In this document: piece after piece, positions 16,542-56,810 of the stretch
Layout of the letters: every line of letters begins with the position of its first letter
Position numbering within the stretch: position 1 is the first letter of the stretch
Origin: Haliotis rubra
Lineage: Eukaryota
NCBI RefSeq assembly: GCF_003918875.1
Contig: NW_025765336.1
Coordinates: 2,604,001 to 2,668,000 of the forward strand
Length of the DNA stretch: 64,000 nucleotides
Direction: 5' to 3'
The notes under the pieces: model-generated
Told to the model about the DNA's origin: nothing
Database searches by the model: none
The model's input: the letters and a program-made list of their open reading frames with translations, nothing else
Made by a program: the position numbers and the translations under genes

Positions 16542-16637
16542 TCCCCCCTCGAGACCAGTAAACAACTTATAGTATTCACACCAGCATTATTCCAGCAATA
16601 TCTGGTGTATTAGACCAGCAATTGATATCATGACCAC

Positions 16638-21289: not shown

Positions 21290-24200
21290 TCACAATCATG
21301 TGTTGTGTTCTCTTTGGGTTCTTAGCCTGGTAAATGTTGGGCTACAATCAGGTGATGCTTTNNNNNNNNNNNNNNNNNNNNNNNNNNNNNNNNNNNNNNN
21401 NNNNNNNNNNNNNNNNNNNNNNNNNNNNNNNNNNNNNNNNNNNNNNNNNNNNNNNNNNNNNNNNNNNNNNNNNNNNNNNNNNNNNNNNNNNNNNNNNNNN
21501 NNNNNNNNNNNNNNNNNNNNNTTGATTACGATTACTGGTTATTGTAGACTCTTTTGAGGTCATAACCCGTTAAATATTCGCCTAAATGAAATTAGCAGTA
21601 TTATGATTCCATTTTAAAGACGCTACATTTTTTTTTTTTATTTGATAATTATGTCACGAGAGGTCACCATGATCTGATGGTCACGGGTGTTTTAAGAATA
21701 CATGTGTATCAGCGTTGTCGAATAACATACTCATGAGTGATCGTGCTACGTTCAATATATTTATAGTATTTTGCATTCATACAATGTGCACAATAAGCTA
21801 TTTGTGTCAATTAACACTTGACTGAACTACTGTACTATACAAATCATTATTATACATTTTTTACATTAACCTTTTGATTTCCGTCTATGGTAAAGCATTG
21901 AATATGTCTATATAGGATAGGATATGTAACAAACAACAGTACAACAGTACTCACGTTGTTTCACAACACAATGCATCTAATAGCACAGGTATCCAGTCCG
22001 TTTTGGTCGTGCCCCGAACATGCAACCTTAACACACACATTCTCGTGCTAAGCGCCCACATCGTGGTATCTCGCAATGGACATGCGTCGACACGGACACA
22101 AACTCATTACCGTTAACTATGATATGATATAGATATTTTGGGCAATTGAAATGAATNNNNNNNNNNNNNNNNNNNNNNNNNNNNNNNNNNNNNNNNNNNN
22201 NNNNNNNNNNNNNNNNNNNNNNNNNNNNNNNNNNNNNNNNNNNNNNNNNNNNNNNNNNNNNNNNNNNNNNNNNNNNNNNNNNNNNNNNNNNNNNNNNNNN
22301 NNNNNNNNNNNNNNNNNNNNNNNNNNNNNNNNNNNNNNNNNNNNNNNNNNNNNNNNNNNNNNNNNNNNNNNNNNNNNNNNNNNNNNNNNNNNNNNNNNNN
22401 NNNNNNNNNNNNNNNNNNNNNNNNNNNNNNCAATCGTTTACTTGAAATTGACACGTTTACGGCTTCATTTTTAAAGCGCATGGACGCTATGTTTTGATCT
22501 GATAATTATGACATAAGAGGTCACCATGATCTGAATAACATACTCATGAGTGATCGTGCTACGTTCAATATATTTATAGTATTTTGCATTCATACAATGT
22601 GCACAATAAGCTATTTGTGTCAATTAACACTTGACTTAACTACTGTACTATACAAATCATTATTATACATTTTTTACATTAACCTTTTGATTTCCGTCTA
22701 TGGTAAAGCATTGAATATGTCTATATAGAATAGGATATGTAACAAACAACAGTACTCACGTTGTTTCACAACACCATGCATCTAATCGCACAGGTATCCA
22801 GTCCGTCTTGGTCGTGCCCTGAACATGCATCCCTAACACACACACACATTCTCGTGCTAAGCGCCCACATCGTGTTCTGTCGCACATGCACATGCGTCGA
22901 CACGGATACAAATCTTCTCACTACTGTTAACTATGTTTTGATGTAGATATTTTGGGCAATTAATATGACTTTCATTTATAGGCAATTTGAAAACATTATA
23001 TATATGAAATTTCTCGAATTTTCCTTTCACTAAATAGACAAATGTTTTTGTCTTTGTATTTCCTGTTTTACCCCTTTCCTCTTCTGTTTGTTTGATAATT
23101 TCTGTTATGAATGTGACAATAAAAGAATGTCCTTGTTTTGTTTACGCATTATATCATTAAGTTATGATGTTTGTGTGTTCCTATGCAGTTTTGCATCCTC
23201 AAGACCCACTGTCTACTATTTTTGTCACCAGTTTCTAATTTTCGATGTCGGTTGAAATATCACAATATAGACAGGCAGTGGGTACATTTGCTGCAGCACT
23301 TCATTCTAAACACTCAGGTAAATTTGCTCTTTATCAACATCTATTCAAATTTCGTTGTCTGTATGGCAGTTGTGTTTCCATAATGATGTCACTTTTGGGA
23401 TTTTGCTTTTAGAATAGTCCATCTAAATGTACATAGTCTTAAGTAGAAATTAGATATTTTAAGAGTTGAACTTGGATTTTATGATGTGATATGTCTAACC
23501 GAAACTTGGTTAACTTCCGATACAAATAACATTGATATAAAAATTCCTGGCTTCCATCTACCTTTCCGTAAAGACAGACAAACTCGCGGTGGCGGTGTAG
23601 CAGTCTATGTAAAAGATACTATTTGTGCGTTGTTGATGTCTGATTTAGACATAGTCGGACTTGAGGAGATATGGATACAGACTAAATGTAAAACAAGAAA
23701 CTACCTGATTGGAACTTTTTATCGCGCCGACAAGAGCTCCGAATATTGGAATTTGATCGATGAATCAATAGGTAACGCAGTTGATCTTAATATGCAGACA
23801 ATTATTACCGATGGTTTCAATATTGACGTTCTTCATGGCAATAATCAAAAGATAGACTATATACAAAGTTACTACGGCCTTCGACAAATAATCACGGATG
23901 CTACTAGAATAACCGCAAGTAGTAAAACTTTGATCGATTTGATATTTGTTTCTCGCGTCGACGTTGTTAAAGATTCTGGTGTATTAGATCCCATATGCAT
24001 CGATCACTGCCCCGTATTTGTTAACATAGCAGAAATGATGCAGCACAAGAATTCATTCAAAAGGAAAATCTATGATTATTCTTCAATGGATGTTAATGGT
24101 ATGAATGAAACTATCAAAGAGATAAACTCCGATATATTTTTCTCTTCGGGGAACGTAGATAATATCACTGAAAACCTTACATCCTTGTTATTGAATATCA

Positions 24201-25657
24201 TGAATGAATATATTCCAAATAAAACTGTAATAATTAGAACCAAAGATCCCGCGTGGATGAATAACGAAATCCGATCCTTAATAAGAAAACGAAATCGTGT
24301 TCATAAGATTGCAAAAAACAGTAACTTTCCTGATGATTGGACTAAGTTCAGAACACTTCGGAACAAAGGAAGGGCAACAGTTAGAAATGCAAAATGTGCT
24401 TTTGATGCACGAGTTGATGAATCTATAAATAACACTCATGGTACTAAAATGTGGTGGCGATTAGTTAAGAATTATGTAAAAACAAATTCGATAAAATCGT
24501 CCTTTCCATCAATTGTCAGCAATAACATAGTTTATGACAATGAACAAGATATTGCTGATGTACTCAACTCATTTTTCTCAGAACAATCCCAAGTTGCTGA
24601 TCCTAACGCCGATCTGCCTGATTTCGAACCGCGTGAAATCGATCATCCTCTGTCATCTATCACAATAAGTAATGGAGATGTTCGCGATATTCTTCTGAGT
24701 CTAGATACATCGAAAGCCATGGGGCCTGATGGCATTGGAAACATCATACTGAAACTAACTGCAACCTCTTTAAGCCCGTTGTTAGCTTAGTTGTTCAACA
24801 TCTCTTTTCGTAATAAAACGTATCCTACTTCTTGGAAACTAGCCTCGGTGATTCCGCTTCATAAGAAAGGTGATGAACACGATTGCTCAAACTATAGACC
24901 TGTAGCGTTAACAAGCTGTGTCGCTAAAGTTTTTGAAAAATGCACTTTTAAATACGTCTTCAACTTCCTCAGGGATAACAATATTTTATCAAACTTACAA
25001 TCTGGATTTATGCCTGGTGATTCTACAGTAAATCAACTAACTTATCTTTATAATTTTATCGCAAGTGCCGTAGACCAAGGAAAGGAAATCAGAGCGGTAT
25101 TCTGTGATGTAAGTAAAGCCTTTGACAAAGTTTGGCACAAAGGTATTATCAGAAACAGCTAAGTGTTCATGTGGTCATTATAACGAAGACGTCATTCACT
25201 ACCTTTTTACATGTCGGAACTATCAAAGTTAAGAACAACGGTGTATTTTCATATTCAAGGATACGATGTGAAAACTACCTTATACGGTAACCGTGCATTG
25301 GATAACTTGTGACATTCTCAACTCATTACACCAGTTCATTTCTAAAAGTAAGCGCTTCCAGTGATTATCACCTCTACATATACATGTATATTCAATGCAA
25401 GACAAGATTTATATAACTTGATTTTCTGCGGCAGCTCTTGTCGTTGCTAGGCACAACCAACACCATAACCAAATATTTATTATTCAATCATTTTTTTTAG
25501 TGTAATTTTGTCTCAGTATTATTCTTTTCTTGTCGGACTATTTCAATTATGTATCCAGCTATATTGGAACCGTGTACTGGAGCGGCGTTTATATAAGCCA
25601 CTAGGCTTGTTCGCCTATCCAGGTTTCTGCATTGACGGAATAAAAATATGTTTAAAC
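21290..25657 (+). mobile_element. CR1/L2-group LINE insertion with 15-bp TSD, internally deleted
   Basis: Perfect direct repeat CACTATACAAACGTG at 21275-21289 and 25658-25672; 3' end AATAAAAATATGTTTAAAC; contains APE and RT coding sequence. Confidence 0.88.
23415..25363 (+). pseudogene. LINE ORF2 (AP endonuclease plus partial reverse transcriptase), disrupted
   Basis: APE motifs ICLTETWL, RKDR..RGGGVAVYV, TRITASSKTLIDL and DHCP. RT motifs GPDG, NYRPVAL, QSGF and DVSKAFDKVWH. Stop at 24790. Sequence jumps directly to C-terminal CSCGHYNEDVIHYLFTC, so the YADD region is deleted. Confidence 0.92.
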
Positions 25658-28600
25658 CACTATACAAACGTGATTAGGATGTCGTAGTAAAATTTCTCTG
25701 GATGTGTTTGGTTTGTTTGGTATTTGAGGGAAGAAATGATGTGTGATATGTTTGATAATTTACATTCTAAATTCACAAAGATGTGTCCTTTTGCTGAAAC
25801 TTAATTTTGCTTTTATGGCAACATTTACTTTATTGATAAAAAATAGTGAGGGTTAGCCTCTTGTGCACTATAAGTTAATTCCAGCTTATAATTCAAGTAG
25901 ACTGTGCACCTAGAGGGGCAGAATACGTTCACGTTATGTCGAACCCTTGATTTCATTAAGAACTTATCGTGATTCATAAATAAATGCGTCTGATACACTG
26001 AGACCCGTACACGCGTGAATAATTGGTACTGATGAATTCAGCTGATATATATCATTATGGCCTAAATATTACTTTCATTTTGTAGATGTTGTTGAAATCA
26101 GGAAGAAGAATGTCCTAAATGTTATGTTTGTTTCATTCTTTAGGTATATGAATGTTGCTGTCTTTGTAATTCTATTTCTATATGTTCTATAATATTCGTT
26201 CATATATTTTCGTATTGTACACTATGCATATACACATCTATAGTAATTAAGGTTAAGATAATCATCTTTAAAATCAGCAATTTGATATATTTTCTATGCG
26301 TTCCAATGCAATAATTTTCAAGTACTTGTCATTTTGACCACAATCGTTCCTCAGTGGCAGGAGAGAATATTAACTGTTTACTTTACTTTTGTGTGTTGAG
26401 CTAAATCACTAGATGATACCCAGACCATTGATAAAATATGAATGTTTGTGAATGAATTAATGTAACACAAAGTTACTTAGTTTCACTTTCACGTCAATAC
26501 TTAATTTTAGACAACTGGCGCACATGAGCCAATTGTCTGTTGAATATCCATTGAAATCGTAATAGTTTCGATCTATGTGCTTTTATGATAAATGATCTTT
26601 GGTGATGTGAAAGCGTTAAACGAATTGATTTATCAATTGCCTAATTTGAAGTCACAACCGTCTATGTCTTTTTTGTCATAATCCTGTCTTAAATACATGT
26701 ACTTTCATAACCTTGTCACGGGCCTCAACATGTCTTCAGTAACTAGGAAGGTATCAAGTCCTTTAACGTGGGATATGTTTGTCATGCTTAAAGGGGGACA
26801 AACATATTCTCTGTTGCTGTTTGCAGGCTTACACCCCACAATAGTGACAAATACGTTCTCCTTAAATCAGGGTTCCGGGTAGCATTATCGCCTGCCTTTC
26901 TCTACCTCTTGGTCAATCCTTAGTTTCCAAACCTTATTCACATGATCATTTCATTCATGTTGAAATGTTTGGCTGGGAACCGACCACAAATCACATCTGG
27001 GCACAGCACAACATATTCAGCAACTGTGACCCTGTGAATTGTTTGTCCTGTGGAAAACAGCTTTTTGTATTCTATTAAGTTACGTCTCATTAGGGGGTCA
27101 TTTCCCACGATAAAGAATGCACCACATACTAACATGTTTATCACAAAGCAGATTTAATCGTGGTCCTGAGAACATTGGAAGACACAGACAGAAATTGGCT
27201 ACTTAGAAGTTCTAGTCTCATTAAAGAATGGATATATTTCCCTCTAGAAAAACGCCCCAACATTTTGTAACATCATGTAAAAGTATATCGTTGTTATTCA
27301 AAGAGTCGAAACTGCCTTTCCACGTAGCATTGTTGAGACGTCATGTGATTTTAGAGTGTTGAGAGATCACCATATTATGTTTTTTAAATAAACTGACGTA
27401 CAAAAGAAAGTACACACCTGGTGCTTTTGGATTACTTTCCAAAAAAGCGATGTAAATGTTTTGAAAAGAGTTTTTACAGTGATATATAAGGCACAGACAA
27501 AACACCACAGATAGCGTGCCCAATTGCGAAGTTGCCAGTCAAAATCAAAGTATAAAAATATTCCTCTACGCAACTAACCTTCCCCATGCTTAACAAAAAG
27601 GGCTTACAGTAAAGCCATATCTTACAGGCTACAACGCTTGACAGAAAACTTCTGTTTTGAAGAGTATCGGTAGATTAGAGGTGTCGGACTGGAATGTTTT
27701 ATTACCGTTTGTGGATTACCACGTGCACGGATAATCCCCTGGTATTATGAAGCTAAGGCCTGTAACCTTTGTTCTACGACTATAAATCTCGAATCGATGC
27801 ACTGAGGTTTTAGGGAATAATTCATTTGAAGTGCACCTTTATGCCTTTCTGACTTAAGACTTGATTCTATAAGCCGTGTGTGCGCCAACTGATCCCTTAT
27901 CTCACTTTAGTTTTCGAATCTGTATTTGCCTGTAGCAGGTATATTGCATGGATATATGCTCCTTTTATCGAAATATCTAGTTAAAAACTACACTGTATTG
28001 TGGTAGTAATGGCAGTATATGTGATATTTATGAATATTATTAATATGCCCCATACAGACAGATCGTCATTATTTACAGTGTTTAACACAACAGTCTGTGG
28101 CTGAAAAATAATTAATTTGCAAACATTAATAAAATCCATATGTTCGCTGAAACTTAATGTATCACTTAAAACATCAGTTCCCTTGTCAGGAGATTTCATA
28201 CATTGTCCATGTTGCCTTTGTCTGATTTTATGAATTAATCTGGCTTGGCCAAATATTTCAAAGCAATGTCAAGATCTTTACTCTCCAGTTGACACTGTGA
28301 GTTCTTTCATAAGAGTCCATTTTTTATTCCAGCTTTGTTAAAGTGTTTCTGAATCACTATCAACAACTGATGATACAAAGATTTGAATGGTTTTGTGTTT
28401 TTATCATTTTATCTTCATGTTGTGGAAAATTACACCATGGTCAATCAAGTACACCTTGTGTTTAAATACCAGGAAATTACGTTTCATAAATATCACGCAA
28501 ACATTTTCCACGAATTTCGATCAGATATTGTTTTGGCTTGGAATTGACACCATAATTGATATTATGGCAATCATAACATTTGTATTCATAGGTGACCTCA

Positions 28601-29417
28601 GTTGTCAATCTGACTCAGTTCCGTTCACTTTCTTATAATTGTCGCTAAATCATACCGTATTCATAATTTGTGATTTTATTAATTTTCAAGTTGAATTGCC
28701 TTGCTGGTGTCATTACACTTCTGTTTCTGTCTATATAATATGTGTCATCAAAGTCAAAAGTCGTTATTTATTTAGTGCAGTCCATGAGTTATTTGGTCGG
28801 GGCAGTTACGCGAAACCGAAACTGCGTCTTACTGGTTGGCGTAACGGTCGTGAAACAATTGTGCAAATGACGTAGCCGATTTTGATTGTCCTCGGCATGT
28901 GACGTCACATGTGGTCGTCCTGACCAGATGCGTTCAGATGTCGTACCCGTTTGATACACGTGTCCTCAGGTTTTGACTTGTCCGTCTACTGCACCTCATG
29001 ACACGTGCAACAGACACAGTGGACTGGCCAGTGTTGGGCTTGCCAATTTTACGTTCACGTTCAACATTTGTAAGGCACGGTATGAGAACTGTTTATCTTT
29101 CAAGGATTGTTGACGTGTGTTTTTTCGAATCACCAACAATTCATTCCACGTGTTGGTGGTTAGGCACATGGAATTGAGGTCACCTGATCCGTCACACATG
29201 CAAGGTCGCGTTTTCACAAAAGGCATGCTGCATGCACCTTGCGTGGTTCACCACAGTGGGAGGATACGTTTGTTTAGACATGGGCATTACGGTATTCGCC
29301 CATATTAATTACCTTGTACTACCCATTTTCAATATAATTCATTTCTCCAAGTGTGAAATTTCTTTCTGTAGTATATTTTACAGACTGCGTGTGATCATTA
29401 CGTACATTCAAGATATA

Positions 29418-31049
29418 CTCAGCAGCATAAAAAACGTCATACGAATTCAATATTAGATAGGCACTGTAATCAAATCATTACAGAAACGGACATAATAAGC
29501 AGATCAAAAACATTTTTTTGTGTACAATATTTGGACACATCAATGAATAGTGAGTGAGTTAGTTCAGTTTTACGCCGCTTTTAACCATATTCCAGCTATA
29601 TCACGGCGGGGGACACCAGAAATGGGCTTCAGACATTGTACCTACGTGGGGAATACATCAATGAATAATTTCAAGACATGACGTGAACGTTTGCAGTCCA
29701 TTCAGACCCTTGACTTCAGTATCTAGTGTGACCACCACGAGCGGCAATAACTGCAGCACAGCGTTTATGCATGAAGTGCACCAGTCGATTGATGAAGGCC
29801 ATTGGCACCTTGAACCACACTCTGAGAAAAGGCCTGGCACAATAAATCGGCTGTGTTCGGCCTTGGTATGACATTATTCTGTCTCCTCTGAATTTCATCC
29901 CAAAGATGTTCAATTGGGTTTAAATCAGGACGAAGGGCCGGCCACTGCATAATGTTGACACTGTTCTGCTGTAGGAAGTCTCGTGTAGCTCTGGCAGTGT
30001 GGGCCCGGGCGTTATCATGCTGGAATATATTGTTCCAGTGACGTGCGAAATGTGGTATGACATGGGGTCTGAGAGCTCGGTCGATGTAGCGCACCGCTGT
30101 GATGCCATCTCCTCTCCCTGGACCAAGGTTCTGGAACACCACAGGACCCACTCTGGTTCAGGCCTATTCCACCCCATACCATGATGCTTCCACCTCCCCA
30201 TGAGTCTCTTTCCATATCATATTGGTCTGAGTAACGCTGGCCACGTCATCGCCATATTCTTGTTCTGCCATCTGCAGTTGATACGCAGTACCGACTCTCA
30301 TCTGTGAATAGAACAGTTCTCCATTGCCTGTATCGCCAGTTTTGGTGTTGTAGGGCAAACTGTAGACGTTCACGCCAATGACGAGGGGTGAGGATAGGTC
30401 CACGGTAAGGTCTACGGCGATGGAGGTTCCCTCTGTTAAGACGTCGGCGTACTGTATCAGTACTGATTGGTCTTCCGTGTGTTCCCACTGTCTGGCGTGC
30501 TGTTTCGGATGCCTGCATGAAGGGATTATGTACATGCTGTCGCACAACATGGCGGTCTTGTCGTCTTGTGGTCACCCTTGGTCTGCCAGTACGGGGACGA
30601 GCATTTGTGGTGTTGGTGGCCCGGAAACGTTGCTGCAGCCTGTAAATGGTCCGAACGTTGACCTGGAAGTGATTGGCAACGGCTTGTGCAGTGTGGCCAG
30701 CTTCAAGTCTTCCTAGCGCCTGGTTCCTCTCGAGCTGTCGTGAGTCGCGACATCCATCCTTGTGATGTGAATGTTTCAACCAGGTTTGGGGGTGCATTTT
30801 ATAGGGCTGGTCCTTGTGAACAGCACGTGCAGCATGAGTTGCATGAAAAACATGGAGAACACCGTACCATCTCCGAGATCAGGTTGCGTTTATGAAACGA
30901 TTTCCTGGGTTCCATTAGGGAAGAAATGTCTATGCTCAAGTAAAGTCGGAGATGTTGTCAAAAATATACAATCAAAGCATTAAATGAGTTAACATTTATC
31001 CGTTTCTGCTAAGGAAAATTCAAAAACTGACGTTTCTGTTGCTGCTTAG
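29418..31049 (-). mobile_element. Tc1 (DD34E) DNA transposon, near full-length, decayed
   Basis: TIRs CT(C/A)AGCAGCA..A.AAACGTCA with TA flanks. Transposase motifs GRPRVTT, VLFTDES, IMVWGGI, FQHDNARAH and PDLNPIEHLW lie in broken frames 29716-30750. Confidence 0.93.
29550..29654 (-). mobile_element. SINE family A, 5'-truncated, nested in Tc1, 13-bp TSD
   Basis: TSD ACATCAATGAATA at 29537-29549 and 29655-29667. Confidence 0.9.
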
Positions 31050-32883
31050 TATACTTTAGCAAGCGTAAATCATCATACTATACACGGTCACAGCAAAAAC
31101 TATCGTTTTGGTGGATTGGGACGTTATCTACAGGTATGTTCAACCTACAACCGGCATGGTACTCACCGTTGTATTACACAAATGAGTCTCTCAGTGTTCA
31201 GCTTCATAATAGCGTCTTTCCAGGAAAACATCAGTTCGGTTCCAAAGTCAGTTGGACTATTTGATCAGCAATGGGCAGTGAAGTTAATGGAAGACAATTT
31301 CCGCCAGATCGGACTTTGGGGCTTGAGGGATAGTCTTTCTGAACATGTACTACTCGTAATGGGGATTTCTTTTCAAATTAATTGGGAACATATGTACAAT
31401 AGCATTATTTAATACAATTTGTTGAAGTATATTAGTTCATCGAAGTTCCTGTACTTTGCTTGACAGGGTTATGGGGATGTTTTAGGTTGGTTATTATTGG
31501 TCGCCATTGACAGCCTTTGAATACATTCACATTATATGAGGATGCCTCCTTCTTACCTCAATTCGTGACACTTTCACAGACTATGGACACACTTCAATTC
31601 GTGACTTCCTGCATTGTACTCAATGTTCTAAATCTTTTCTATGCTAAAAGACAATAATTCAGGCAAAGTAAATTTGCTTTTCAGAAAATACAGTGTTTGG
31701 TATGTGTAGATATTCAAAAAAAATAACCTGAAACTCCTTGGTGAAGGTATTAAGTGATGTGACATGGGCTGGTGGTTGATTAACGAGGACGTTATTGGTT
31801 GTCTTTGCATGCATCTTAACTATGAATAACGTCTAATATATAACGCATCTAGACCGTCAACTTTTCAAGGTCACTCAAAACAGAAGTATAATTCTAAGTT
31901 ACATGCAAAGTTTCATTAGGATGCAGATATCCCTTTCATCATGTTTCAATATTCCACACAATATTCAACTTGGAAAATGTAGGACGAAACAATGATGGAT
32001 AAAATAATTTTAGCGTGGTGAGAATTCATCTAGACGTGTTCTTGTATTCTCCTTTAATCCTGTCTGAAGTACCGGTACTTTCATAATCTTGTCACTGGTC
32101 TCAACATGTTTCTTTAACAGGGAAGGTATTGATTACTTGAACTTGGTCGCTTTCTGTTACATTGCTGTTTCGTGGGGACCAAAGATATATATTCTTACAT
32201 CAAGATTTGCGTAGCTATATCTTTTTCTGCCATTAAGTCTTGTCGATGCTGTTAATCAAGAAGATTGACACTTTCTTATCAATGAGATATGCCTTTGGAT
32301 ACCAATCGCATATCAGAGCTAGAGCACCATGAGCATGGTAAATGTACGTCGATCTTACCTCGTGAGTTCATCCTCACTTGCAAAAATCGGTGATTTAATG
32401 ACAGGACCAGTATGTCTAGATACGTCCTCACTTAGCTGTGCACACACATCTTTTCTCTACGAACAAATATTNNNNNNNNNNNNNNNNNNNNNNNNNNNNN
32501 NNNNNNNNNNNNNNNNNNNNNNNNNNNNNNNNNNNNNNNNNNNNNNNNNNNNNNNNNNNNNNNNNNNNNNNNNNNNNNNNNNNNNNNNNNNNNNNNNNNN
32601 NNNTGAAAATAGCAATTTCATGTAGCAATGAATTATAACGTGATTCATTTTACAAAAGGTTTTGCTCTGTTTATGAGTCCTATGGTGTTTATGTTTGGAA
32701 ACATCACAACAAAACGCACCATCCGTAAAATACCCGTATTTAACAGCATGATTTTCAATTTCGGCATGTAGTGTCACAGCATACACAATTCACATGCAAG
32801 TTGGGGATCAGATAGTCTCAATGATGGGAATAAACGGTTGATCTCTGTCTGTCTGTATTTGGAATATTGTTGACGAACGCAAA

Positions 32884-33763
32884 ATGCCACGTCTAAGTGA
32901 AGCCAATCGTCATATCGCCATTAATTTGCTTGAAGCTGGCCAGTCTCAACGTGCAGTTGCCCGACGCATGAATGTTCACCAAAGCACCATTTCACGGCTC
33001 TGGGAGATATCGCCGGCAGAATTCGGTAGCAGATGCCCTCGTAGTGGGCGACCTCGAGCGACCACTGCAGCGCAGGATCGCTACATCCGGGAACATCACC
33101 TGCGTCATCGAACAGCTACGGCGACCAGTACCGCTCGACAAATACCCGGATTGAGGAGGCTTTCTGCACAGACCGCCAGGAACAGGTTGAGAGAGGCTGG
33201 TTTATGTGCCAGAACACCTTATTTTGGCCCTGTTCTTCCACAAAAACATCGTCGAGTTCAATGGTGCACCAACGTTCAGGCCTGGAACCTACCGAATTGG
33301 CGTAGAATCTGGTTCAGTGATGATCACAGGGAGCGATCACCTGCCGTAGGAGAAGTGATTTGGTGATGATCCAGGGCAACCTGACAGCTCAACGGTACTG
33401 TGACGAAATCCTACGCCCACACCTCCTTCCAATCATTGATCGCCAGAGGGAGTTGTTTCAACAGAACAGTGCCAGACCCCACACAACACGTCACACTAGA
33501 GACTTCCTCCAGAACCACAACATCAATGTGCTCCCCTGGCCCTCAAGATACCGGACTTAAACCCGATTGAACATCTGTGGGATGCCCTGGACAGACGGAT
33601 GCGACGCCGTAACCCTCAGCCCCAGACACTTCAGCAAATCGCACAGGCACTACAGGCAGAGTGGGCTGCGATTGGGCAACACGAGATTCTGAGACTTATT
33701 CGTTCGTTGCCGAGGCGATGCCATGCAGTTCTGGATGCCCACGGTGGTCACACGAGGTATTGA
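32884..33763 (+). mobile_element. Tc1 transposase pseudogene, second family
   Basis: MPRLS...SGRPRATT..QDRYIR, IWFSD, FQQNSARPH, VLPWP..PDLNPIEHLW, with frameshifts and an internal deletion. The 5' TIR probably lies in the N-gap. Confidence 0.9.
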
Positions 33764-35194
33764 CTTCAGCGCCACCACACGTCTCCATGTGACACTCAAA
33801 CTGACTTTCCTCAAGTTGGCGCCAAAGACGGATAAGTCTGCATTCCCCGAGTGCATTTTCGCTATATTTCATTGACTCATAAAGCCTACAAGATGTTTCA
33901 AAATAAACATAAAATCCATATCTGAATAACTGACGACAGCATCAAGTCACCATTCATTGTGTGTGACCAAAAGGTCCATGGCTGGATGCTGCATTTTGGC
34001 AGAACACAATTAACTGACTTTACACCATGTGATCCATGTCCGGAGACACGTTGGGTACAGTGATGCTGTTTGTGGTACCTGAAATTTGAAACATTGTCAG
34101 ATATTTGAGGGTGCTGATTTTTGTCTGAGAATGGTTCTTAAATTTAAGGTACCAATTCCCTTGTTAGCAAATTTCATATCAGCAACATGTGGCCTCTAAC
34201 CTAATAGAGATTGCGGGGGAAAGGTCAAAGTTAAGAACTCAAGAACTCTAGTCGAGACTGACTGTTCTTTGATGAGAGTCCCTATACGATTACCGCTTTG
34301 TCCCAATAATATGTTTATAGATCATTTTATCATTGATACATGTATTTGTTGAAACCACACACATAACTAATAAAATAAGCCTTGCATCTACCACAAATCT
34401 CACAAAGAATACTTTGTCCACGAATTGTGAAAGCACACTCTGTTATGCTGTACCTGCAATGGGACCACTGCTAGTGATATCACTAATGGTATTTCGGGAA
34501 TAAATATTACTTGTATTTCAATAATATGTAATCACAACACTTCACCTTCACACCCATAGTTGGCTCCAGATATTCCAGGTGACCAAATTACAGCAAGGAC
34601 TGGGGAGTTGACGTATTTGTTAGTTTAATAGTGATATGTTCGATTTATATTCATGTTTAATTTCTTCTTATTCAGATTTGAAAACCCTGACAAATCATAT
34701 GTGAGTATGAATATGTGCCACCACCCACATCTTTATCTTTTCGAGGTATTCAAAGACACAGAGCCTTTTACATTACTCGAAATTACACTGTATTGTAAAT
34801 TACGATAACTGCACATCAGGCTAATAATTCTATGCAATCGATTCTCCCGCAGTAATTTGAACGTTTTCCCTCACCAAATTTATTCAGGCTTAATATATTG
34901 CATATCATCTCCTTGCTGACAGACAGTAGCAGTTATGCCTCAGCATATGACAGACTTTAAGAAACGTTAAAGTTTTGCGGATCGAGGTAAAGCTATGTCT
35001 GGCTTGAGAAAAAAACAAACAGTTCAGCTACATGTCGGGCACAGATAAAATATTAAAGCAGCAATACAGTACGAAATCGTGAAAACAGAAAGCCCTAAAC
35101 AGCCTAGTATGTGCCCCAGTTCTTATTTGTATATCTCCACCCTCGCCCATCGCCAATACACATGCATGACATTGGTCACTATGACAACATCATG

Positions 35195-35203
35195 GTATAT
35201 ATG
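35195..35203 (+). promoter_or_regulatory. Candidate TATA box of the EGF/GPI gene
   Basis: GTATATATG about 45 nt upstream of ATG 35243. Confidence 0.4.
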
Positions 35204-35242
35204 GGCATGGGACATTCGAGAGTTGACAAGAAGGCGAAGAAC

Positions 35243-38200
35243 ATGCAGCTTTTCAGAGTTCCTATTTCCTTACCTTTACTGGGTAAGTTAGTCATCATGA
35301 AAAGTTATTTCCTTTCCATTCTTTAATGATAACTGTAGGGTACAAGAAACGATTGAGTAATGTACATTTACGATAAAATTATGCACTGATAGAAATGTTA
35401 ATTGTGGAATGATTATTACGTACTCTTACATAAAATTAGTAACAATGTTGTATTTATGTAACACTTTATGGAAATATGCAAATAAAACAATAATGCTGGA
35501 AATGTCACAATTTTTTCCCTTTTCTCAGTTTTGTCATGCTGGGCAGTACTTGATGGCGTCTATGGATGTACGGTTCCGGATGATTGCCATCATTCAGGAA
35601 AATGCATAACGGCTACAAAAACATGTAACTGTATCGGTACTGGATATACAGGGGAAACCTGTGACGATGGTTAATGAGTAGAAATATGTCAACACATTTC
35701 AACAAATTTATTTAAACTAATCCGTTACATTTAGCTGGAAATGTAGCTATGGGATTTAAACAGGACACCGTGCGGTTAGTATGTCGAATCTACGTCTTAG
35801 TATGAGTGATGCAAGAAGTGAATCGAAGTCAATTAAATAAATCAATAGTTAGAGTTGAATGTGTTTTGAATCGCTACTGCATCATCAAACCACCAAGATG
35901 GCCTTTGTATTCGTTGTGACGTATAATGGTGTGTTTGCCTTCACTCTAATCACTTATTCTGAGGTAGGAATTTTTTAACTATCTCTCATTTGCAATACCA
36001 AGGATGCTTAAACAATTTGATTTTGTTGATTCCATTCTCCCCCAAATCAAATCTGTAATAATAAACTTTCGAGTTTGTGTCCTCGTACACAATTTCTGCC
36101 ACAAATGTGTGACGATACCAGGATCATATTAAGTTAAAATCATGTAAAATTGCATTTCCAACACTTCTTGTTTATTATTTCAACCATGCACACTCGTAAT
36201 ATTTGCACATTGTATTATATGAAAGCTCTGTGTGCACGTTCTTTTCTAAGTATTCATCAGTATTAATGGAGACGAGTGCATTGTTAAAGAGAGATACCTT
36301 TATGTCCCCTGGGGGTTCTAGGGAGAGAGTGAATCAGTGTGTGTGTAAATGTTCTATTATACAAGTTTCATTACATCAAAGTACATTTGTGTCGACGTAT
36401 TCACTACAACAGAGACAAATGAATGTAAAACCTCCCATGCTCCCTGTGATGAACACGCTGACTGTACAAATACACCTGGATCCTACAACTGTACATGCAA
36501 GCCTGGCTATGCTGGAGATGGAAACACTTGCACAGGTAAAAATAGACGAGACCAACACGTGGTTACTCCGATTTGATATCAATATCTACGTATTGTTTTG
36601 ATAATCATAAAAATATTTAGGTATTAGTCTGATTAATATTGGTATAATTGCATGTAATGTGTGAATTATTGTAGGATTAGTAGCATCTGCAGTATTATTT
36701 GTATGGGCGGAGATATTAACTGCAGCAGTAGTAATTGTAATAGTGGTAGTAATTGCAGGAGAATCACTTGAGTAGTAATAGCAGCAGCAGTGACATCGTA
36801 ATGGTAGTAGCAGTAGTAATGATAGAATCAGCAGTGGCAGTGTAAGTAGTAGTAGCATAATACCAGCTAGCAGTGGTATTAATAGCAGCAAATGTAGTAA
36901 TAGCGGCAGCAATGGCAATGGTAGCAGCAGCAATAATGGTTTCAGCAGTGGTAACGGCTGTGGCGGAGGTGGAGGTAGTGAAAAGCTATAGAATAACAAA
37001 TGTGTCGTGGTATCTCTTAATGAGATATCGAAAGGAATGACCAATATATGTCCGATAAATATGATGTCATATTGTCCGTGTTTGTTCATCCACAAACATC
37101 GTAACCTCGTAGTTACAAGTAGTATATTTTCACTGTTTCGAATTTCGAATTAATTTTCAGTCCAACAATTATGTTTCCTCATTTTCCAGAGGGAGTGTGT
37201 TCTAAGGATGGGAAAGAATGCCTCAATGGAGGAAAATGCGAAACAAGCAAGACTCCCACCACGTGTACTTGTGCAAGCGGTTACAAAGGAGCCAATCTGT
37301 CAAAATGGTGAGGAAACATTTGTAAAGAGCATTAAATCTATGAAATCTTCAAACAACGTCAAAGTTATTTGATCAGGGTTTGATCCACAACCTTCCTAAC
37401 GTTCTCAAACAATTCTTAGTGTAGAAATAGTGAGGAAGATTCTAGTAATGGTTTAGTACCAAAATGGTGTCCGATGCAATTTCCATGTTCTAATTGTGAA
37501 CAATTGACTTGCACTTGCGTGTGTTTGTGACTGCCGTAATCGATTGTGTAGGATACTCAAACGTTTTTGCGAACACCAGGTATGATCGTTATTTAATATT
37601 GGCACGTGATTAGAGCTGGAATCGTACAATGTTTCTTTCTGCAATAATAGAGACTGGTTGTCCTCTTCCTTTGGTGTACTATAATTTCGTAGATTAAATA
37701 TATGTTATCCAACCCGAATAGAATAAGTCGAAGTTTAAACGTCATAGTGTTTATAGATATTAAAGAGTTTTAATGAAAACTTGTTGACGAGTTACATGTA
37801 ACAATCTTGAATACCCCTCACCACTGATATCCGTGATTCAAGCACTGAAAAAGAGCTTCCGGTTACTTGTTCTAATCAATGTTTATGTGTATACTGTTGT
37901 CTGGCTGTACCTTTAACACTTAAATAGCGGGAGAGTGAGATCACTCATAAGAAAGGTTATTATCATATACACATCAGTCTTCTGTTTCAACCGAATTGAC
38001 AATATTAATAATCGATAAACATTTCCAAAAATATAAAGTAACAACTGAGATAAGGTACATGTAAAAACACCAGTAGTTAGAATTGAATGTGTTCTAAATC
38101 GCTGAAGGATTTGTCAAACATTCACAAGAGAGTTTAACGTTGAGACAAAGAAACTGTTTCTAATTCCATAGGAAAGGTGTGAATTCTGTATAACAATTTA

Positions 38201-41200
38201 ACGATGTGTTCACCTAACTATGAATTATTAGTATTTATCAAACTTTTAGCATATTTTAAACAGCATTTTCTCAGGTCCGAAAAGGCGCTACTGCATCATC
38301 AAACCACCAAGATGGCCTTTGCATTCGTTGTGACGTATAATGGTGTGTTTGCCTTCACTCTAATCACTTCTTCTGAGGTAGGAATTTTTTACCTATCTCT
38401 CAGTTGCAATACCAAGGATGCTTAAACAATTTGTTTTTGTTGATTCCATTCTCCCCCAAATCAAATCTGTAATAATAAACTTTCGGATCCTACCTGGATC
38501 CTACAACTGCACATGCAAGCCTGGCTATGCTGGAGATGGAAACACTTGTACAGGTAAAAATAGACGAGACTAACACGTGGTTACTCCGATTTGATATCAA
38601 TATCTACTTACTGTTTTTTGATAATCATAAAAATATTTAGGTGCAGTTAATCTGATTAATATTTGTATAACTGCATGTGATGTGTGACATTAGTTGTAGG
38701 ATTAGTAGCATCTGCAGTATTATTTGTAAGGGCGGAGATATTAACTGCAGCAGTAGTAATAGTAATAGTGGTAGTAATAGCAGGAGAATCACTTGATTAG
38801 TAATAGCAGCAGCAGTAACATCGTAATGGTAGTAGCAGTAGTAATGATAGAATCAGCAGTGGCAGTGCAAGTAGTAGTGGCAGAAGTAATACCAGCTAGC
38901 AGTGGTAGTAATAGCAGCAAATGTAGTAATAGCGGCAGCAATGGCAATGGTAGCAGCAGCAATAATGGTTGCAGCAGTGGTAACGGCTGTGGCGGAGGTG
39001 GAGGTAGTGGAAAAGCTATAGAATAACAAATGTGTCGTGGTATCTCTTAATGAGATATCGAAAGGAATGACCAATATATGTCCGATAAATATGATGTCAT
39101 ATTGTCCGTTTTTGTTCATCCACAAACATACCGAACCTCGTGTTACAAGTATATATTTCCACTGTTTCGAATTTCGAATTTAATTTTCAGTCCAACAATT
39201 AAGTTTCCTCATTTTCCAGAGGGAGTGTGTTCTAAGTATGGGAAAGAATGCCTCAATGGAGGAAAATGCGAAACAAGCAAGACTCCCACCACGTGTACTT
39301 GTGCAAGCGGTTACAAAGGAGCCACCTGTCAAAATGGTGAGGAAACATTTGGGAAGAGCATTAAATCTATGAAATCTTCAAACAACGTCAAAGTTATTTG
39401 ATCAGGGTTTGATCCACAACCTTCCTAACGTTCTCAAAAATTCTTAGTGTAGAAATAGTGAGGAAGATTCTAGTAATGGTTTAGTACTAAAATGGTGTCC
39501 GATGCAATTTCCATGTTCTAATTGTGAACAATTGACTTGCACTTGCGTGTGTTTGTGACTGCCGTAATCGATTGTGTAGGATACTCAAACGTTTTTGCGA
39601 ACAATAGGTATGATCGTTATTAAATAGTGGCACGTGATTAGAGCTGGAATCGTACAATGTTTCTTTCTGCAATAATAGAGACTGGTTGTCCTCTTCCTTT
39701 GGTGTACTATAATTTCGTAGATTAAATATATGTTATCCAACCCGAATAGAATAAGTCGAAGTTTAAACGTCATAGTGTTTATAGATATTAAAGAGTTTTA
39801 ATGAAAACTTGTTGACGAGTTACATGTAACAATCTTGAATACCCCTCACCACTGATATCCGTGATTCAAGCACTGAAAAAGAGCTTCCGGTTACTTGTTC
39901 TAATCAATGTTTATGTGTATACTGTTGTCTGACTCTACCTTTAACACTTAAATAGCGGGAGAGTGAGATCACTTATAAGAAAGGTTATTATCATATACAC
40001 ATCAGTCTTCTGTTTCAACCGAATTGACAATATTAATAATCGATAAACATTTCCAAAAATATAAAGTAACAACTGAGATAAGGTACATGTAAAAACACCA
40101 GTAGTTAGAATTGAATGTGTTCTAAATCGCTGAAGGATTTGTCAAACATTCACAAGAGAGTTTAAAGTTGAGACAAAGAAACTGTGTCTAATTCCATAGG
40201 AAAGGTGTGAATTCTGTATAACAATTTAACGATGTGTACACCTAACTATTAATTATTAGTATTTATCAAACTTTTAGCATATTTTAAACAGCATTTTCTC
40301 AGGTCCAGACGGCGCTACGGCATCATCAAACCTCCAAGATGGCCTTTGCATTCGTTGTGACGTATAATGGTGTCTTTGCCTTCACTCTAATCACTTCTTC
40401 TGAGGTAGGAATTTTTTACCTATCTCTCAGTTGCAATACCAAGGATGCTTAAACAATTTGTTTTTGTTGATTCCATTCTCCCCCAAATCAAATCTGTAAT
40501 AATAAACTTTCGGATCCTACCTGGATCCTACAACTGTACATGCAAGCCTGGCTATGCTGGAGATGGAAACACTTGCACAGGTAAAAATAGACGAGACTAA
40601 CACGTGGTTACTCCGATTTGATATCAACATGTACGTATTGTTTTTGATAATCATAAAAATATTTAGGTGCAGTTAGTCTGATTAATATTGGTATAATTGC
40701 ATGTGATGTGTGACATTAGTTGTAGGATTAGTAGCATCTGCAGTATTATTTGTATGGGCGGAGATATTAACTGCAGCAGTAGCAATAGTAATAGTGGTAG
40801 TAATAGCAGGAGAATCAATTGAGTAGTAATAGCAGCAGCAGTAACATCGTAATGGTAGTAGCAGTAGTAATGATAGAATCAGCAGTGGCAGTGTAAGTAG
40901 TAGTAGCAGAAGTAATACCAGCTAGCAGTGGTAGTAATAGCAGCAAATGTAGTAATAGCGGCAGCAATGGCAATGGTAGCAGCAGCAATAATGGTTGCAG
41001 CAGTGGTAACCGCTGTGGCGGAGGTGGAGGTAGTGGAAAAGCTATAGAATAACAAATGTGTCGTGGTATCTCTTAATGAGATATGGAAAGGAATGACCAA
41101 TATATGTCTGATAAATATGATGTCATATTGTCCGTTTTGTTCATCCACAAACATACCGAACCTCGTGTTACAAGTATATATTTTTTCACTGTTTCGAATT

Positions 41201-42524
41201 TCGAATTTAATTTTCAGTCCAACAATTATGTTTCCTCATTTTCCAGAGGGAGTGTGTTCTAAGGATGGGAAAGAAATGCCTCAATGGAGGAAAATGCGAA
41301 ACAAGCAAGACTCCACCACGTGTACTTGTGCAAGCGGTTACAAAGGAGCCACCTGTCAAAATGGTGAGGAAACATTTGTGAAAGGATTAAATCTATGAAA
41401 TCTTCAAACAACGTCAAAGTTATTTGATCAGGGTTTGATCCACAACCTTCCTAACGTTCTCAAACAATTCTTAGTGTAGAAATAGTGAGGAAGATTCTAG
41501 TAATGGTTTAGTACCAAAATGGTGTCCGATGCAATTTCCATGTTCTAATTGTGAACAATTGACTTGCACTTGCGTGTGTTTGTGACTGCCGTAATCGATT
41601 GTGTAGGATACTCAAACGTTTTTGCGAACACCAGGTATGATCGTTATTTAATAGTGGCACGTGATTAGAGCTGGAATCGTACAATGTTTCTTTCTGCAAT
41701 AATAGAGACTGGTTGTCCTCTTCCTTTGGTGTACTATAATTATGGAATACTTTCGTAGATTAAATATATGTTATCCAACCCGAATAGAATAAGTCGAAGT
41801 TTAAACGTCATAGTGTTTATAGATATTAAAGAGTTTTAACGAAACTTGTTGACGAGTTACATGTAACAATCTTGAATACCCCTCACCACTGATATCCGTG
41901 ATTCAAGCACTGAAAAAGAGCTTCCGGTTACTTGTTCTAATCAATGTTTATGTGTATACTGTTGTCTGGCTGTACCTTTAACACTTAAATAGCGGGAGAG
42001 TGCGATCACTCATAAGAAAGGTTATTATCATATACACATCAGTCTTCTGTTTCAACCGAATTGACAATATTAATAATCGATAAACATTTCCAAAAATATA
42101 AAGTAACAACTGAGAAAAGGTACATGTAAAAACACCAGTAGTTGTTGTGTTATCCTCTTCGTTCACTTGAACGTAATGTTATTTTTTCTGTTATGTTAAG
42201 AAAGCAATTTCATTTTTTAAATTCTAGAAGTATACATGTACCTGTTTATATCTGGATTTATGTATTTTAAAAGTTTGATAAGGCCTTTGAGTTATGCAAA
42301 GGAAACAACTTCCACAATCATTTGAACTTGTTCTCCTGGAACTGGGGAAGATGAAAGTGGAAAAGTTGTTACCGATGGTAGATACAGATATATTTCACAT
42401 AATATACATCTGTTTCATACATGAACGATAATCGGTTCACTTCTCTGTTTCAGCTGGAGGTACGGCGACAATTTCAGCATACCTGCTCTCTCTGACTGTT
42501 GTCACGTTTTTCGTCATCCAGTAA
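35243..42524 (+). CDS. Spliced gene for a small secreted, probably GPI-anchored multi-EGF protein; exons 35243-35282, 35529-35669, 36413-36535, 37190-37307, 39220-39336, 41247-41363, 42454-42524
   Basis: All junctions are GT-AG and phase 1, apart from a +1 indel in 37190-37307. Product: signal peptide MQLFRVPISLPLLVLSCWAVLDGVYG; EGF CTVPDDCHHSGKC..CNC..GYTGETC; cbEGF ETNECKTSHAPCDEHADCTNTPGSYNCTCKPGYAGDGNTC; EGF CSKYGKECLNGGKC..CTCASGYKGATC (3 copies); tail AGGTATISAYLLSLTVVTFFVIQ*. Confidence 0.8.
35846..42143 (+). repeat. Intragenic tandem triplication, ~2.03-kb unit
   Basis: CAGTAGTT junction motif at 38071, 40099 and 42136 (periods 2028 and 2037). Units are near-identical, including an (AGT/AGC)n low-complexity intron block. 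Confidence 0.92.
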
Positions 42525-43409
42525 ACGACCATTCCACGCTGACCGACACACCCAGTTTGAAACTGCGTTCTGCCATGTTTACAGCAAATCAAAGTATACT
42601 AAATTGTAAATCTTTAAAATGACTTGAGTTCACAGATATTTACCATACAAGTAATTTGTTTTGTTATTTGGTTGTTTTTGTATACCCTTTGTTCGAATCA
42701 AAATCTGTATCAGTTTGCAGTGTTGCCTTTGTGTGTGTTATTATGGTAGAGCTATACCGTTTGATTCTTGTTATCATATAAAAGGTCAAATCTCCCCTTC
42801 TTAGCATAAGGTACATGTTGCGTTTATCATTGATTGATTAGATGTGTTTAAGAGACTAGAGGTTACAGTACTATCAGTCAGTTTGCTATACAGGAGCTTT
42901 TAAGTGGATTTTCTTTTTCTGATGACATTTAACAACCATCCCAATAAACAATTTGAAAGATCCATGTACATTTCTCGAAACATATCTCGGGCCTGTCAGC
43001 CAGTGATTCTGATCCTAGTCTGCTTCATGACAATGTTATTACCTCACTGTAGGTAAGAAGACTAAATTCTCCCCTGGTTACCTTTAGGCCATTGATGACA
43101 TGTTACTGATGACGTGGACCTGTCCCCCAGTGACCACTGACACAGAGTAAATGTCATCTACTTCTTATCTATAGTGACACTCACAATCACATGAAAGTCT
43201 GCGGATGTATAGTAATGTGTGCTTGCAACATTGGTAAGTCTTCCGAATAAATATTACCTGCACGTATCTCACTGTCGTTGAGTTCATATATGGGCGGTTG
43301 TAATAGGGCCGTTGCCTGTTAGAAGTATGTTTAACATCCACGAACGCGTGGCACAAGAAAAAGCTAGGGACGATGGTACAAATGTGTGCATGTTATTCAA
43401 CCACACAGA

Positions 43410-43516
43410 TTTCACACCAGTAATGGGCTTCACACATTGTAGCCATGTGGGGAATCGAACCCGGGTCTTCGGCATGACGAACGAACGCTTTAACCACTAG
43501 ACTACCCCACCGCCCG
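43410..43516 (-). mobile_element. SINE family A, head and partial body
   Basis: GGGCTTCACACATTGT...GAACCCGGGTCTTCGGC...TTAACCACTAGACTACCCCACCGCCC. Confidence 0.85.
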
Positions 43517-43740
43517 TTTCGTTGAAAGATGGCACATGGGAACACAAAGTGAGTCCGCTTTACCCGTTATAAGTTTGTCCGTTATATCCATGAATTGTAC
43601 ATGAATAAATATCCGGCACACAGAACAAAGTTCGTTAAATCTGTCAGTTTGTTATGAGCGTGTTCGTCATTAACGTAGTTTACTGTATTACTGTTTTGGA
43701 TAGCTTTGAATGTTATTTTACATACAAACGTAATTTGAGG

Positions 43741-44816
43741 CTGTCCGCCCAGGAAAGCCACATTTCAAAAAATCATTTTGCCGGCAAAGCCACATTTCAT
43801 TTTGAAGGGGAATTGCCGGCAAAGCCATATTTTCAATACGCAAACCAAGTAGAGAGTTACCGACTAGTTAAAAAACGCCCCTGATATATAGGTCGGTTTA
43901 AGAAGATCTCAAATGATGTTTCACCATGGACATGTGGAACCACTCTGGGAATGATGGCCATCGGACTAATAACAACCTTGAGGGTTGGCATCACAAGAGC
44001 AACCAGTTAGCCCGAAAGTGCCACCCCAACATTTTTTGAGATTGTCAAACTGTTCAAACGCGAACAATCAGTTATGGAAGTTGAAGTCATGAGCCGCTTC
44101 AAGACGCAAGAAATATAGAAATATTGTCAGCCGACTAAGGTCGCTGAAGACGCAGTTGGCAAATCAACATTTGACTGATGTAGAGTATGCAGACCACAAG
44201 CATACACATAGTATAGCCTTGTATAGTTCATTCTAAATGGAGCGGGTCGGCGACGTGGTCACAGGCTCTCGTGTTTTTGCGAGGATTAATGATTAAAAAT
44301 ATATTGTTTTTGAGATGATCCCCGACTCGAAATGTTTCACAGTACAATACATCATATAGTGTGAAGCATTTCGAGTCGAAATCATCTCAAATGTTGGTAT
44401 ATATTTTATAAAATCTTTAATCCTCGCAAAGACACTCAGAGCCTGTGACCACGTCGCCGACCCGCTCCATTTAGAATGAACTATACCAGGCCATACTATG
44501 TGTATGCTTGTGATTGATGCTGAGAATTAATTATGAGAATTGATGATGGTGTGAATTAAATATGAGTTATGTGAGTGTTACTATACTATGTTTGTTATGA
44601 TTGTGAATCCTCCAGTGAATAAAACTGAAAATAAATGATCTATATCTTTGCTGTTCTATGTTAAATACGGTACCCTATTCCGGGGCTTACAATGTCGTGA
44701 TAGCATTGCCGCCAAAGCCACATTCCCCCGTTGTTCATCCGTGTCCTTTGCCGGGAACGCCACACGAAGTTCAGCCTGTTCTTTTTCTCAAATGTGTCTT
44801 TGCCGGGCTGTCCGTG
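43741..44816 (+). mobile_element. MULE/Mutator-like transposon relic
   Basis: 43926-44090 translates to WNH..DGHRTNNNLEGWHHKSNQLARKCHPNIF/EIVKLFKREQ, the MULE catalytic-E region, with a frameshift. Degenerate termini and GCCGGCAAAGCCACATT subterminal repeats at both ends. Confidence 0.8.
44195..44512. mobile_element. 318-bp palindromic MITE nested in the MULE relic
   Basis: Arms of ~145 bp (CACAAGCATACACATAGTAT ... ATACTATGTGTATGCTTGTG) around a ~20-nt spacer. Confidence 0.85.
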
Positions 44817-54232: not shown

Positions 54233-55129
54233 ATATATTCACGTCAGTGTCCTGGTCCGCTTTGAAATTACTGTGTTAAAATCTTCTGGATGGTAGTCTC
54301 AAGCGTTTACCACTTCGATGTAGGCGGGAGTATGGTGCTGACTAAACATAACCAGCGATTCAAACCCAAATATTTAAGCCCCTAGCGTACCAAAGGGACA
54401 CAACACTTGACTAATCATAGCGCATTTTAAGACTTGGCTAACCCTTCCCAACGAACCAAGGTCAATCACATAATATTCTAGTATATCGGTAAGTTTATAA
54501 GAAGACAATAAGAGTGTTATATTACCCACTACAAGGATGAGCACTGCGATAATACATGGGTAAAAGGACCTAACAATATTAACAAACTCGAATGCAATAC
54601 CTGAATGTTTCTCATTACAGTAGAACTGCTTGTAAACCTGATTAGAGCTAAGATTGTGAGGCGGTTTTGAAAGGACAGTCATCAACACGTTTATAGGATC
54701 CAGTTTGTCAATGATTCCAGTGAAGTTAGCTTTTTAATCTTTGTAATCGTTTTCCAAGCTATGTGGTGGTTATATTGTTTATAGCTGACTGAGCTTTCTT
54801 TGGCAAGTATTTGGTGAAACCCACACATGTGTGTTTGGTGGATTCGGATTCTTCTAAAACGCAACCACCGTCGGTGTTATTAAGCCTAAATTTCAATACA
54901 GTTCACAGGCAAAACATACAAAACGGCTCATAATGACAGTATACTGTGTCATAAAACATATATTAATAACACAAGACATGTTTGTTTATACAGGCAAGAT
55001 CGTTAAGTACTGCCAAGAAATACATTTTGAAGGTTATTAAAAACCCTGACAGATGTTTCAGTGTGGATCATTTAATGTGGACGTCGGCCTGTAGAATGTT
55101 GAAGTATTTGACCATTCATGCTATATATG

Positions 55130-56611: not shown

Positions 56612-56615
56612 TATA

Positions 56616-56810
56616 CAGTGGACTCTGTATAATCCGACATCTGAATTATCCGACAATCTGTGAATTTCGACATATTTTTTGGTCCCGGCAGCGTTCTTCT
56701 TTATTATCATCATTTAAACATTGAATTATCCGACATCTGTACATTCCGAATTCCGACACCATTTTCTGGTCTCAATGACACTATTAATCTGTACAATCCG
56801 ACATCCTGTA
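56616..56810 (+). mobile_element. Left end of a pogo/Tigger-like element (orphan TIR)
   Basis: TA|CAGTGGACTCTGTATAATCCGACA with repeated TCCGACA subterminal motifs. No partner end found. Confidence 0.55.

Follow-up and report, generated by a model that had tools for sequence, protein, structure and literature searches.

Does the tandem duplication in an abalone gene built of epidermal growth factor (EGF) repeats add working EGF domains to its product, or does it leave behind exons that decay? The window analysed here is a stretch of 64,000 nucleotides of Haliotis rubra (blacklip abalone) DNA, contig NW_025765336.1, positions 2,604,001 to 2,668,000, and the gene occupies positions 35243..42524 of its + strand. 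An initial annotation, made from the sequence alone, had described a hidden gene for a multi-EGF surface protein whose EGF number is expanding. We found that the locus is a real but ordinary member of a lineage-restricted, fast-turnover family of small EGF-only surface proteins. A unit bearing one EGF exon is present three times, and in the assembly two of these three EGF exons have a disturbed frame. We therefore do not regard the gene as gaining working EGF domains: at a probability of roughly 60%, it is a dispersed, recent and decaying copy in an abalone-only family of fast turnover, or has at best one extra EGF.

Exon structure and domain content

The region is AT-rich eukaryotic DNA without N runs, and its open reading frames (ORFs) are fragmentary only, as had been noted. 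Exons were found by reading the sequence, followed by a script check of their AG acceptors and GT donors, and each was then scored on Pfam against the curated cut-offs. All seven GT-AG exons that had been proposed passed the splice-site check:

35243..42524, + strand: EGF-repeat gene of Haliotis rubra, seven exons
35243..35282, + strand: exon 1, start codon and first 13 signal-peptide codons; donor GTAAGT after a final exonic G, phase 1
35529..35669, + strand: exon 2, end of the signal peptide and N-terminal six-cysteine EGF-like module; phase 1-1
36413..36535, + strand: exon 3, calcium-binding EGF (cbEGF) module; phase 1-1
37190..37307, + strand: exon 4, EGF exon of unit 1, 118 nt, with an extra A; exits in phase 2
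39220..39336, + strand: exon 5, EGF exon of unit 2, 117 nt, phase 1-1, intact
41247..41363, + strand: exon 6, EGF exon of unit 3, 117 nt, with a +1/-1 indel pair; outer frame kept
42454..42524, + strand: exon 7, 23-codon tail ending in TAA; C-terminus resembling a glycosylphosphatidylinositol (GPI) signal

Most exons have the phase-1 junctions described earlier, but exon 4, with its 118 nt, leaves in phase 2. Exon 3 scores above the cut-offs of EGF_3 (2.3e-13) and EGF_CA (2.2e-10; 41 bits versus a cut-off of 27), starts with T-N-E-C and later contains C-T-N-T-P-G-S-Y, and is thus a cbEGF module. Exons 4 and 5 both exceed the cut-off of Pfam EGF (3.3e-8 for exon 5). Membership of the EGF-like domain is therefore found for exons 3, 4 and 5, with exons 2 and 6 below threshold: exon 2 has its six cysteines and scores 18.1 bits on EGF_2 (cut-off 22.1), and exon 6 reaches only 16.4 bits on Pfam EGF because of its indels. 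In the proposed chain of signal peptide, EGF, cbEGF and three EGFs, the final trio thus consists of one intact and two damaged modules as assembled. Exons 1–3, 5 and 7 and every splice site are intact in the assembly.

Both ends of the predicted protein are shared with paralogues. Exons 1 and 2 encode a basic residue followed by a hydrophobic stretch of ~16 residues that gives way to small residues, a set of sequence features that is conserved in the paralogues; the 13 residues of exon 1 are the same in two of them, L013 and L015. Exon 7 encodes A-G-G, a 6-residue spacer and 15 mostly hydrophobic residues (mean Kyte-Doolittle 1.9) that run to the stop codon, so that the hydrophobic C-terminus with no cytoplasmic tail was described correctly. 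By a rule-of-thumb check, this layout fits a C-terminal GPI signal. Exon 7 is conserved in 7 other loci, and public Haliotis models have the same kind of tail; two different tail sequences occur among family members, alike in their order of small residues, spacer and hydrophobic end. The family proteins are probably secreted and GPI-anchored.

The RefSeq model and its reading frame

Contrary to its description as hidden, the gene is annotated in RefSeq as XP_046559769.1, 'neurogenic locus notch homolog protein 4-like', from Haliotis rubra. This model starts at an upstream ATG at 35162, follows exons 1–4, jumps directly to exon 7, reads it in a shifted frame and continues into a small added exon:

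43055..43087, + strand: extra 3' exon, in the RefSeq model only, after the out-of-frame read through exon 7

No upstream in-frame ATG exists in the two closest full-length paralogues (L013 and L015), so that the RefSeq start is not conserved. For this reason we prefer the start at 35243, whose methionine is the conserved one.

The 3' end of the model could be taken at face value, in which case the gene would make a protein of three EGFs that is secreted without an anchor and ends in a novel hydrophilic tail. This path is exactly the one along which the RefSeq protein maps, and the model includes a downstream exon not required by a search for open frames alone. However, the shifted tail matches no other family tail, whereas the in-frame tail is under purifying selection and conserved both among paralogues and among species; dN/dS is ~0.1–0.4 for the tail exon and for the cbEGF exon in comparison with more distant paralogues. 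Moreover, the path from exon 4 to exon 7 is forced on the predictor by the extra base in exon 4, since joining this exon to exon 5 or 6 gives TGA and joining it to exon 7 gives a shifted, non-hydrophobic tail. No RNA support for the model was seen either, and we consider it quite improbable that the RefSeq structure is the true one. The RefSeq 3' end thus appears to be in the wrong frame, with the in-frame tail as the one that the family conserves.

A tandem unit of 2.03 kb

Seed extension and alignment identified a unit of ~2027 bp that occurs three times in tandem, each time with one EGF exon. Tandem duplication of an EGF-exon-bearing unit, as suggested before, is therefore well founded. The array and its parts are as follows:

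35872..42143, + strand: three-unit tandem array, with cores at 35872-38078, 38286-40106 and 40313-42143 and joining segments of ~207 nt
36077..36472, + strand: segment present in unit 1 only, from alignment; its lack in units 2 and 3 removes the cbEGF acceptor and the first 60 nt of that exon
38493..38553, + strand: cbEGF stump of unit 2, reduced to the last 20 codons with the donor; acceptor lost by deletion
40520..40580, + strand: cbEGF stump of unit 3, 20 codons, like that of unit 2

The units are 97.7–98.4% identical in pairs over 1.1 kb. Tandem Repeats Finder, with a longest period of 500, reported no match for the array. The original unit consists of a cbEGF exon and an EGF exon, and units 2 and 3 share a deletion of ~397 nt that corresponds to 36077-36472 of unit 1.

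Upstream of both stumps the frame stays open to a possible AG acceptor, which would give a possible cryptic exon of phase 1-1 (38404-38553 and 40431-40580); the RefSeq model of a paralogue with the same stump omits it. The introns of the units also hold low-complexity stretches rich in GCA/GTA (36660-36990, 38680-39020 and 40700-41050). These yield spurious minus-strand Leu/Pro-rich ORFs of up to 169 aa, and public contigs break or rearrange at them.

Indels in the duplicated exons: decay or assembly error

Exon 5 is the sole intact copy among the three duplicated EGF exons. In exon 4, an extra A at 37294-37295 removes Cys6 and moves the exit to phase 2. Exon 6 gains an A at 41274-41276 and lacks a C at 41312/41313, so that 13 codons are out of frame and Cys2 and Cys3 are lost. 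By our own alignment count, the duplicated exons contain 3 indels where ~0.7 would be expected; they are hit no less often than the introns between them and hence show no sign of constraint at this locus. Decay is also in line with the state of the nearest duplicates, which are partial too: the copy on contig C469 lacks exons 1 and 2 and has a Cys-to-Tyr change, the copy at C2470:606-612k lacks exons 1–3, and L015, on C440, is frameshifted. With two of three duplicated exons damaged, an expanding EGF number is not shown here.

Several observations weigh against decay. The blacklip abalone assembly (1,378,265,264 bp in 2,854 scaffolds) was built from 30x Nanopore data with two rounds of Racon, a single round of Pilon and haplotig purging (PMC6774278). 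Each of the three exon indels alters the length of a short run of identical bases by one, which is the kind of error left by Nanopore-based assemblies in near-identical repeats, and polishing with short reads works poorly where tandem units are 98% identical. The +1/-1 pair of exon 6 restores the frame, and this exon could still be read.

These points lead to an alternative in which the indels are assembly errors and the gene is intact, encoding a signal peptide, EGF, cbEGF, three EGFs and a GPI tail, with the largest unit count among its close relatives. Besides the R9-era origin of the Nanopore reads and the same-base context of all three indels, it is favoured by acceptor and donor sites that are identical in the three exon copies, and by nine paralogous EGF-exon copies on C469 and C2470 that are open-framed, though the C469 copy lacks one cysteine. 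On the other hand, the runs concerned are short (1–3 bases), where Nanopore consensus errors are less common; the close duplicates are broken by larger lesions that base-calling cannot explain; and the RefSeq pipeline flagged or corrected no frameshift.

Contigs of public runs (two of DNA from organism A, one from organism B and a presumed RNA run) were aligned to 36530-42529. They were short, and many were cross-placed from paralogues; none spanned a joint between units, and none crossed the three indel sites. A 349-nt contig from the DNA run of an independent animal covers exon 5 without gaps (39041-39389). Run X2 gave nothing on the bin of exon 4, a depth of 1.35 on the first of two exon-6 bins and the intact version on exon 5, which suits assembly errors, but a hole in placed contigs proves nothing. 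The public DNA contigs thus neither confirmed nor refuted the indels, which are features of the assembly only. Weighing both sides, we hold an intact gene to be possible but clearly the less probable explanation, and decay of the duplicated exons to be the better one.

Decay might also extend to the locus as a whole, as a silent, never-transcribed pseudogene with an exon structure inherited from a functional parent in the C2470 cluster. A single search of public runs, made with a long query stretch and covering few runs of the species, found matching DNA runs of two organisms and no matching RNA run, and the presumed RNA run placed no contig on 36530-42529. Silence would also agree with the family proteins, all of which come from genome-derived models and none from transcript assemblies, and with the fragmentary state of the sister duplicates. 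Against it stand the intact exons 1–3, 5 and 7 with all splice sites, together with the weakness of an RNA search of that scope. Complete silence appears very improbable.

Duplicates of the locus and history of the units

A segment of contig C469 (1751000-1760900, L011) duplicates window positions 26912-43784 at 96–98% identity and carries a single unit. A deletion of 2.87 kb, corresponding to window positions 32825-35690, has removed exons 1 and 2 from this copy, whose EGF exon carries the Cys-to-Tyr change. We considered the C469 copy as the other haplotype of the locus and rejected this, since beyond 26912-43784 the sequence either changes order or finds no match; being non-colinear further out, it is treated as a segmental duplicate. 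A second partial duplicate, on C2470, begins within the intron of unit 1 and has two units.

The two-unit form, in which a full cbEGF-EGF unit is followed by a stump-EGF unit, also occurs in the paralogue at C2470:398k, and stump units are likewise found in the 522k and 606k copies of the same contig. The stump therefore predates these copies or has spread among them. The present locus exceeds the 398k form by one unit. A tree built from the units is near-star and does not indicate a source unit; only two pairs in it are firm, one formed by the two units of the 398k paralogue and the other by the C469 unit and the last 606k unit. The number of units (one, two or three) differs between copies, probably through unequal crossing-over. 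A rise at the present locus is not demonstrated, and neither the two-unit form with its stump, being shared with paralogues, nor the one or two units of the close duplicates speaks for expansion. The picture is one of unit-number variation in a fast-duplicating, fast-decaying family and not of directional growth.

An abalone family of EGF-only proteins

Searches of the H. rubra genome gave at least 11 matches to the first-exon region and 8 to the tail exon. Contig C2470 carries most of the family loci, arranged head-to-tail over ~600 kb; further loci are on C440 and C469. Mapped exon by exon, seven loci have the same signal-peptide exon, N-terminal EGF and tail, and they differ in the number and order of cbEGF and EGF exons. 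Since its first exon, N-terminal EGF exon and tail exon are shared at matching phases with these seven loci and with public Haliotis proteins, the gene belongs to the family. Dead copies are part of it as well: L015 has frameshifts in exon 2 and the tail, one tail lacks a stop, and several cbEGF exons lack their last cysteine.

EGF-type modules, 2 to 8 per protein, are the only domains in public models of H. rubra, H. rufescens, H. cracherodii and H. asinina, which are 146–385 aa long. XP_046547196/7 (H. rubra), XP_048242677 (H. rufescens) and XP_071104963 (H. cracherodii) carry the same signal-peptide exon, N-terminal EGF and kind of tail. These relatives, with further models in H. rufescens and H. 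asinina, alternate cbEGF and EGF modules and are automatically named notch-like, NELL2-like, NEL-like or uromodulin-like. The present locus differs from them in its triplicated unit, two damaged exons, two cbEGF stumps and a RefSeq model that ends out of frame. In P0124, the RefSeq model of a paralogue, two tandem copies of the EGF exon are spliced in series and the tail is in frame; tandem units therefore lengthen proteins of this family, at least in gene models.

A profile made from the exon-2 peptides of the gene and three paralogues was searched against 1.84 billion proteins. Only four hits cover both the signal-peptide end and the EGF, all of them abalone, with XP_046559769.1 as one; outside Haliotis, this search returned no family-like match, only generic EGF proteins. 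By this evidence the family appears to be confined to Haliotis, four species of which have members in addition to H. rubra. The earlier view of a lineage-restricted EGF-module protein with variable module number is thus upheld, with 2 to 8 modules across four abalone species. The notch-, NELL2- and uromodulin-like names hide a coherent, abalone-only group that is apparently undescribed: in the abalone literature searched we found nothing specific on the family.

Divergence of the N-terminal EGF

Exon 2 is the fastest-evolving part of the gene. In comparison with L013, the closest full-length paralogue, 18.4% of the sites in its EGF part differ versus 6.3% in 1.3 kb of flanking non-coding DNA (Fisher P-value = 6e-5), with dN (0.17) close to dS (0.16). 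Because it diverges three times faster than the neighbouring introns, diversifying selection on the N-terminal EGF can be proposed. The exon is short, and its divergence fits diversifying selection on the N-terminal loops and, equally well, a patch converted from a distant paralogue.

Taken further, the family could be an abalone-specific cell-surface recognition system in which the distal N-terminal EGF diversifies, rod length is tuned by gain and loss of exon units, and the present locus is a polymorphic member. It would then resemble, in evolutionary behaviour, the lysin/VERL gamete-recognition pair or the immune receptors of invertebrates. We regard this as an unlikely extension of the data.

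Expected product of the locus

The signal peptide would direct the protein into the secretory pathway and then be cleaved. Each EGF module is expected to fold with three disulfides, the cbEGF to bind calcium and stiffen its junction with the preceding EGF, and the C-terminal signal to be exchanged for a GPI anchor. The product would stand on the outer cell surface as a short rod whose length depends on the number of exon units, and the fast-evolving N-terminal EGF, furthest from the membrane, would be the likely contact end. At this locus the 2.03-kb unit is triplicated, most likely by unequal crossing-over, and units 2 and 3 lack most of the cbEGF exon. The only path predicted to give a family-typical protein is exon 1-2-3-5-7; any transcript with exon 4 would lose the anchor signal or meet a premature stop.

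The value of these results is mostly for annotation, in that the RefSeq model appears to end in the wrong frame. The family also offers a clean case of phase 1-1 exon units that are gained, lost and broken. Its parts and the process behind it (EGF modules, a GPI-like tail, unequal crossing-over) are textbook matter and would not surprise a specialist; an N-terminal EGF that possibly evolves faster than introns is a lead in a commercially important animal.

Other elements in the window

Upstream of the gene lie transposon-derived ORFs, with a LINE-like endonuclease/exonuclease/phosphatase domain (under the Pfam cut-off) and two fragments of Tc1/mariner-type helix-turn-helix transposases among them:

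23486-24787, + strand: transposon-derived ORF
30249-30797, - strand: transposon-derived ORF
32884-33363, + strand: transposon-derived ORF

An element at 15463-16542 lies between inverted repeats of 66 nt, and its inside matches long arrays of a ~460-bp satellite on several small contigs (C1370, C966, C684, C1560 and C1717). At 55124-56616 there is an interspersed repeat of ~1.5 kb with at least 40 genome copies at 88–95% identity. Short matches of both its ends on the opposite strand suggest terminal inverted repeats of ~30 nt, as in a non-autonomous DNA transposon.

Comparison with known systems

The names given to the family in RefSeq reflect EGF similarity alone. EGF and cbEGF modules are common to Notch, NELL2 and uromodulin, but the parts that define these proteins (LNR, ankyrin repeats and a transmembrane segment in Notch, LamG and VWC in NELL2, ZP in uromodulin) are not found in the family. 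With 146–385 aa and EGF-type domains only, membership of any of the three was rejected.

The ookinete surface proteins P25/P28 of Plasmodium and its MSP1-19, MSP4 and MSP5 consist of a signal peptide, 1–4 EGF modules and a GPI anchor. The abalone proteins are like them as small EGF-only proteins with a GPI-type tail. However, this is a resemblance in design only: there is no specific homology, and lineage and exon structure differ. The Pfam models for Pvs28 and the MSP1 EGF match exon 3 weakly, beneath the stronger generic matches of EGF_3 and EGF_CA.

Molluscs themselves have EGFL/EGFZP shell-matrix proteins (Gigasin-2, LUSP-17), with a ZP or ZP-like domain after two EGF modules; EGFZP proteins carry a transmembrane domain, and in gastropods only EGFZP has been found (PMC9290575). 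We rejected membership of this group, as the exons and the full-length family members match EGF-type Pfam families only, with no ZP. What the abalone family does have in common with EGFL/EGFZP proteins is a secreted product with a signal peptide and tandem EGF-like modules, encoded by tandemly duplicated genes.

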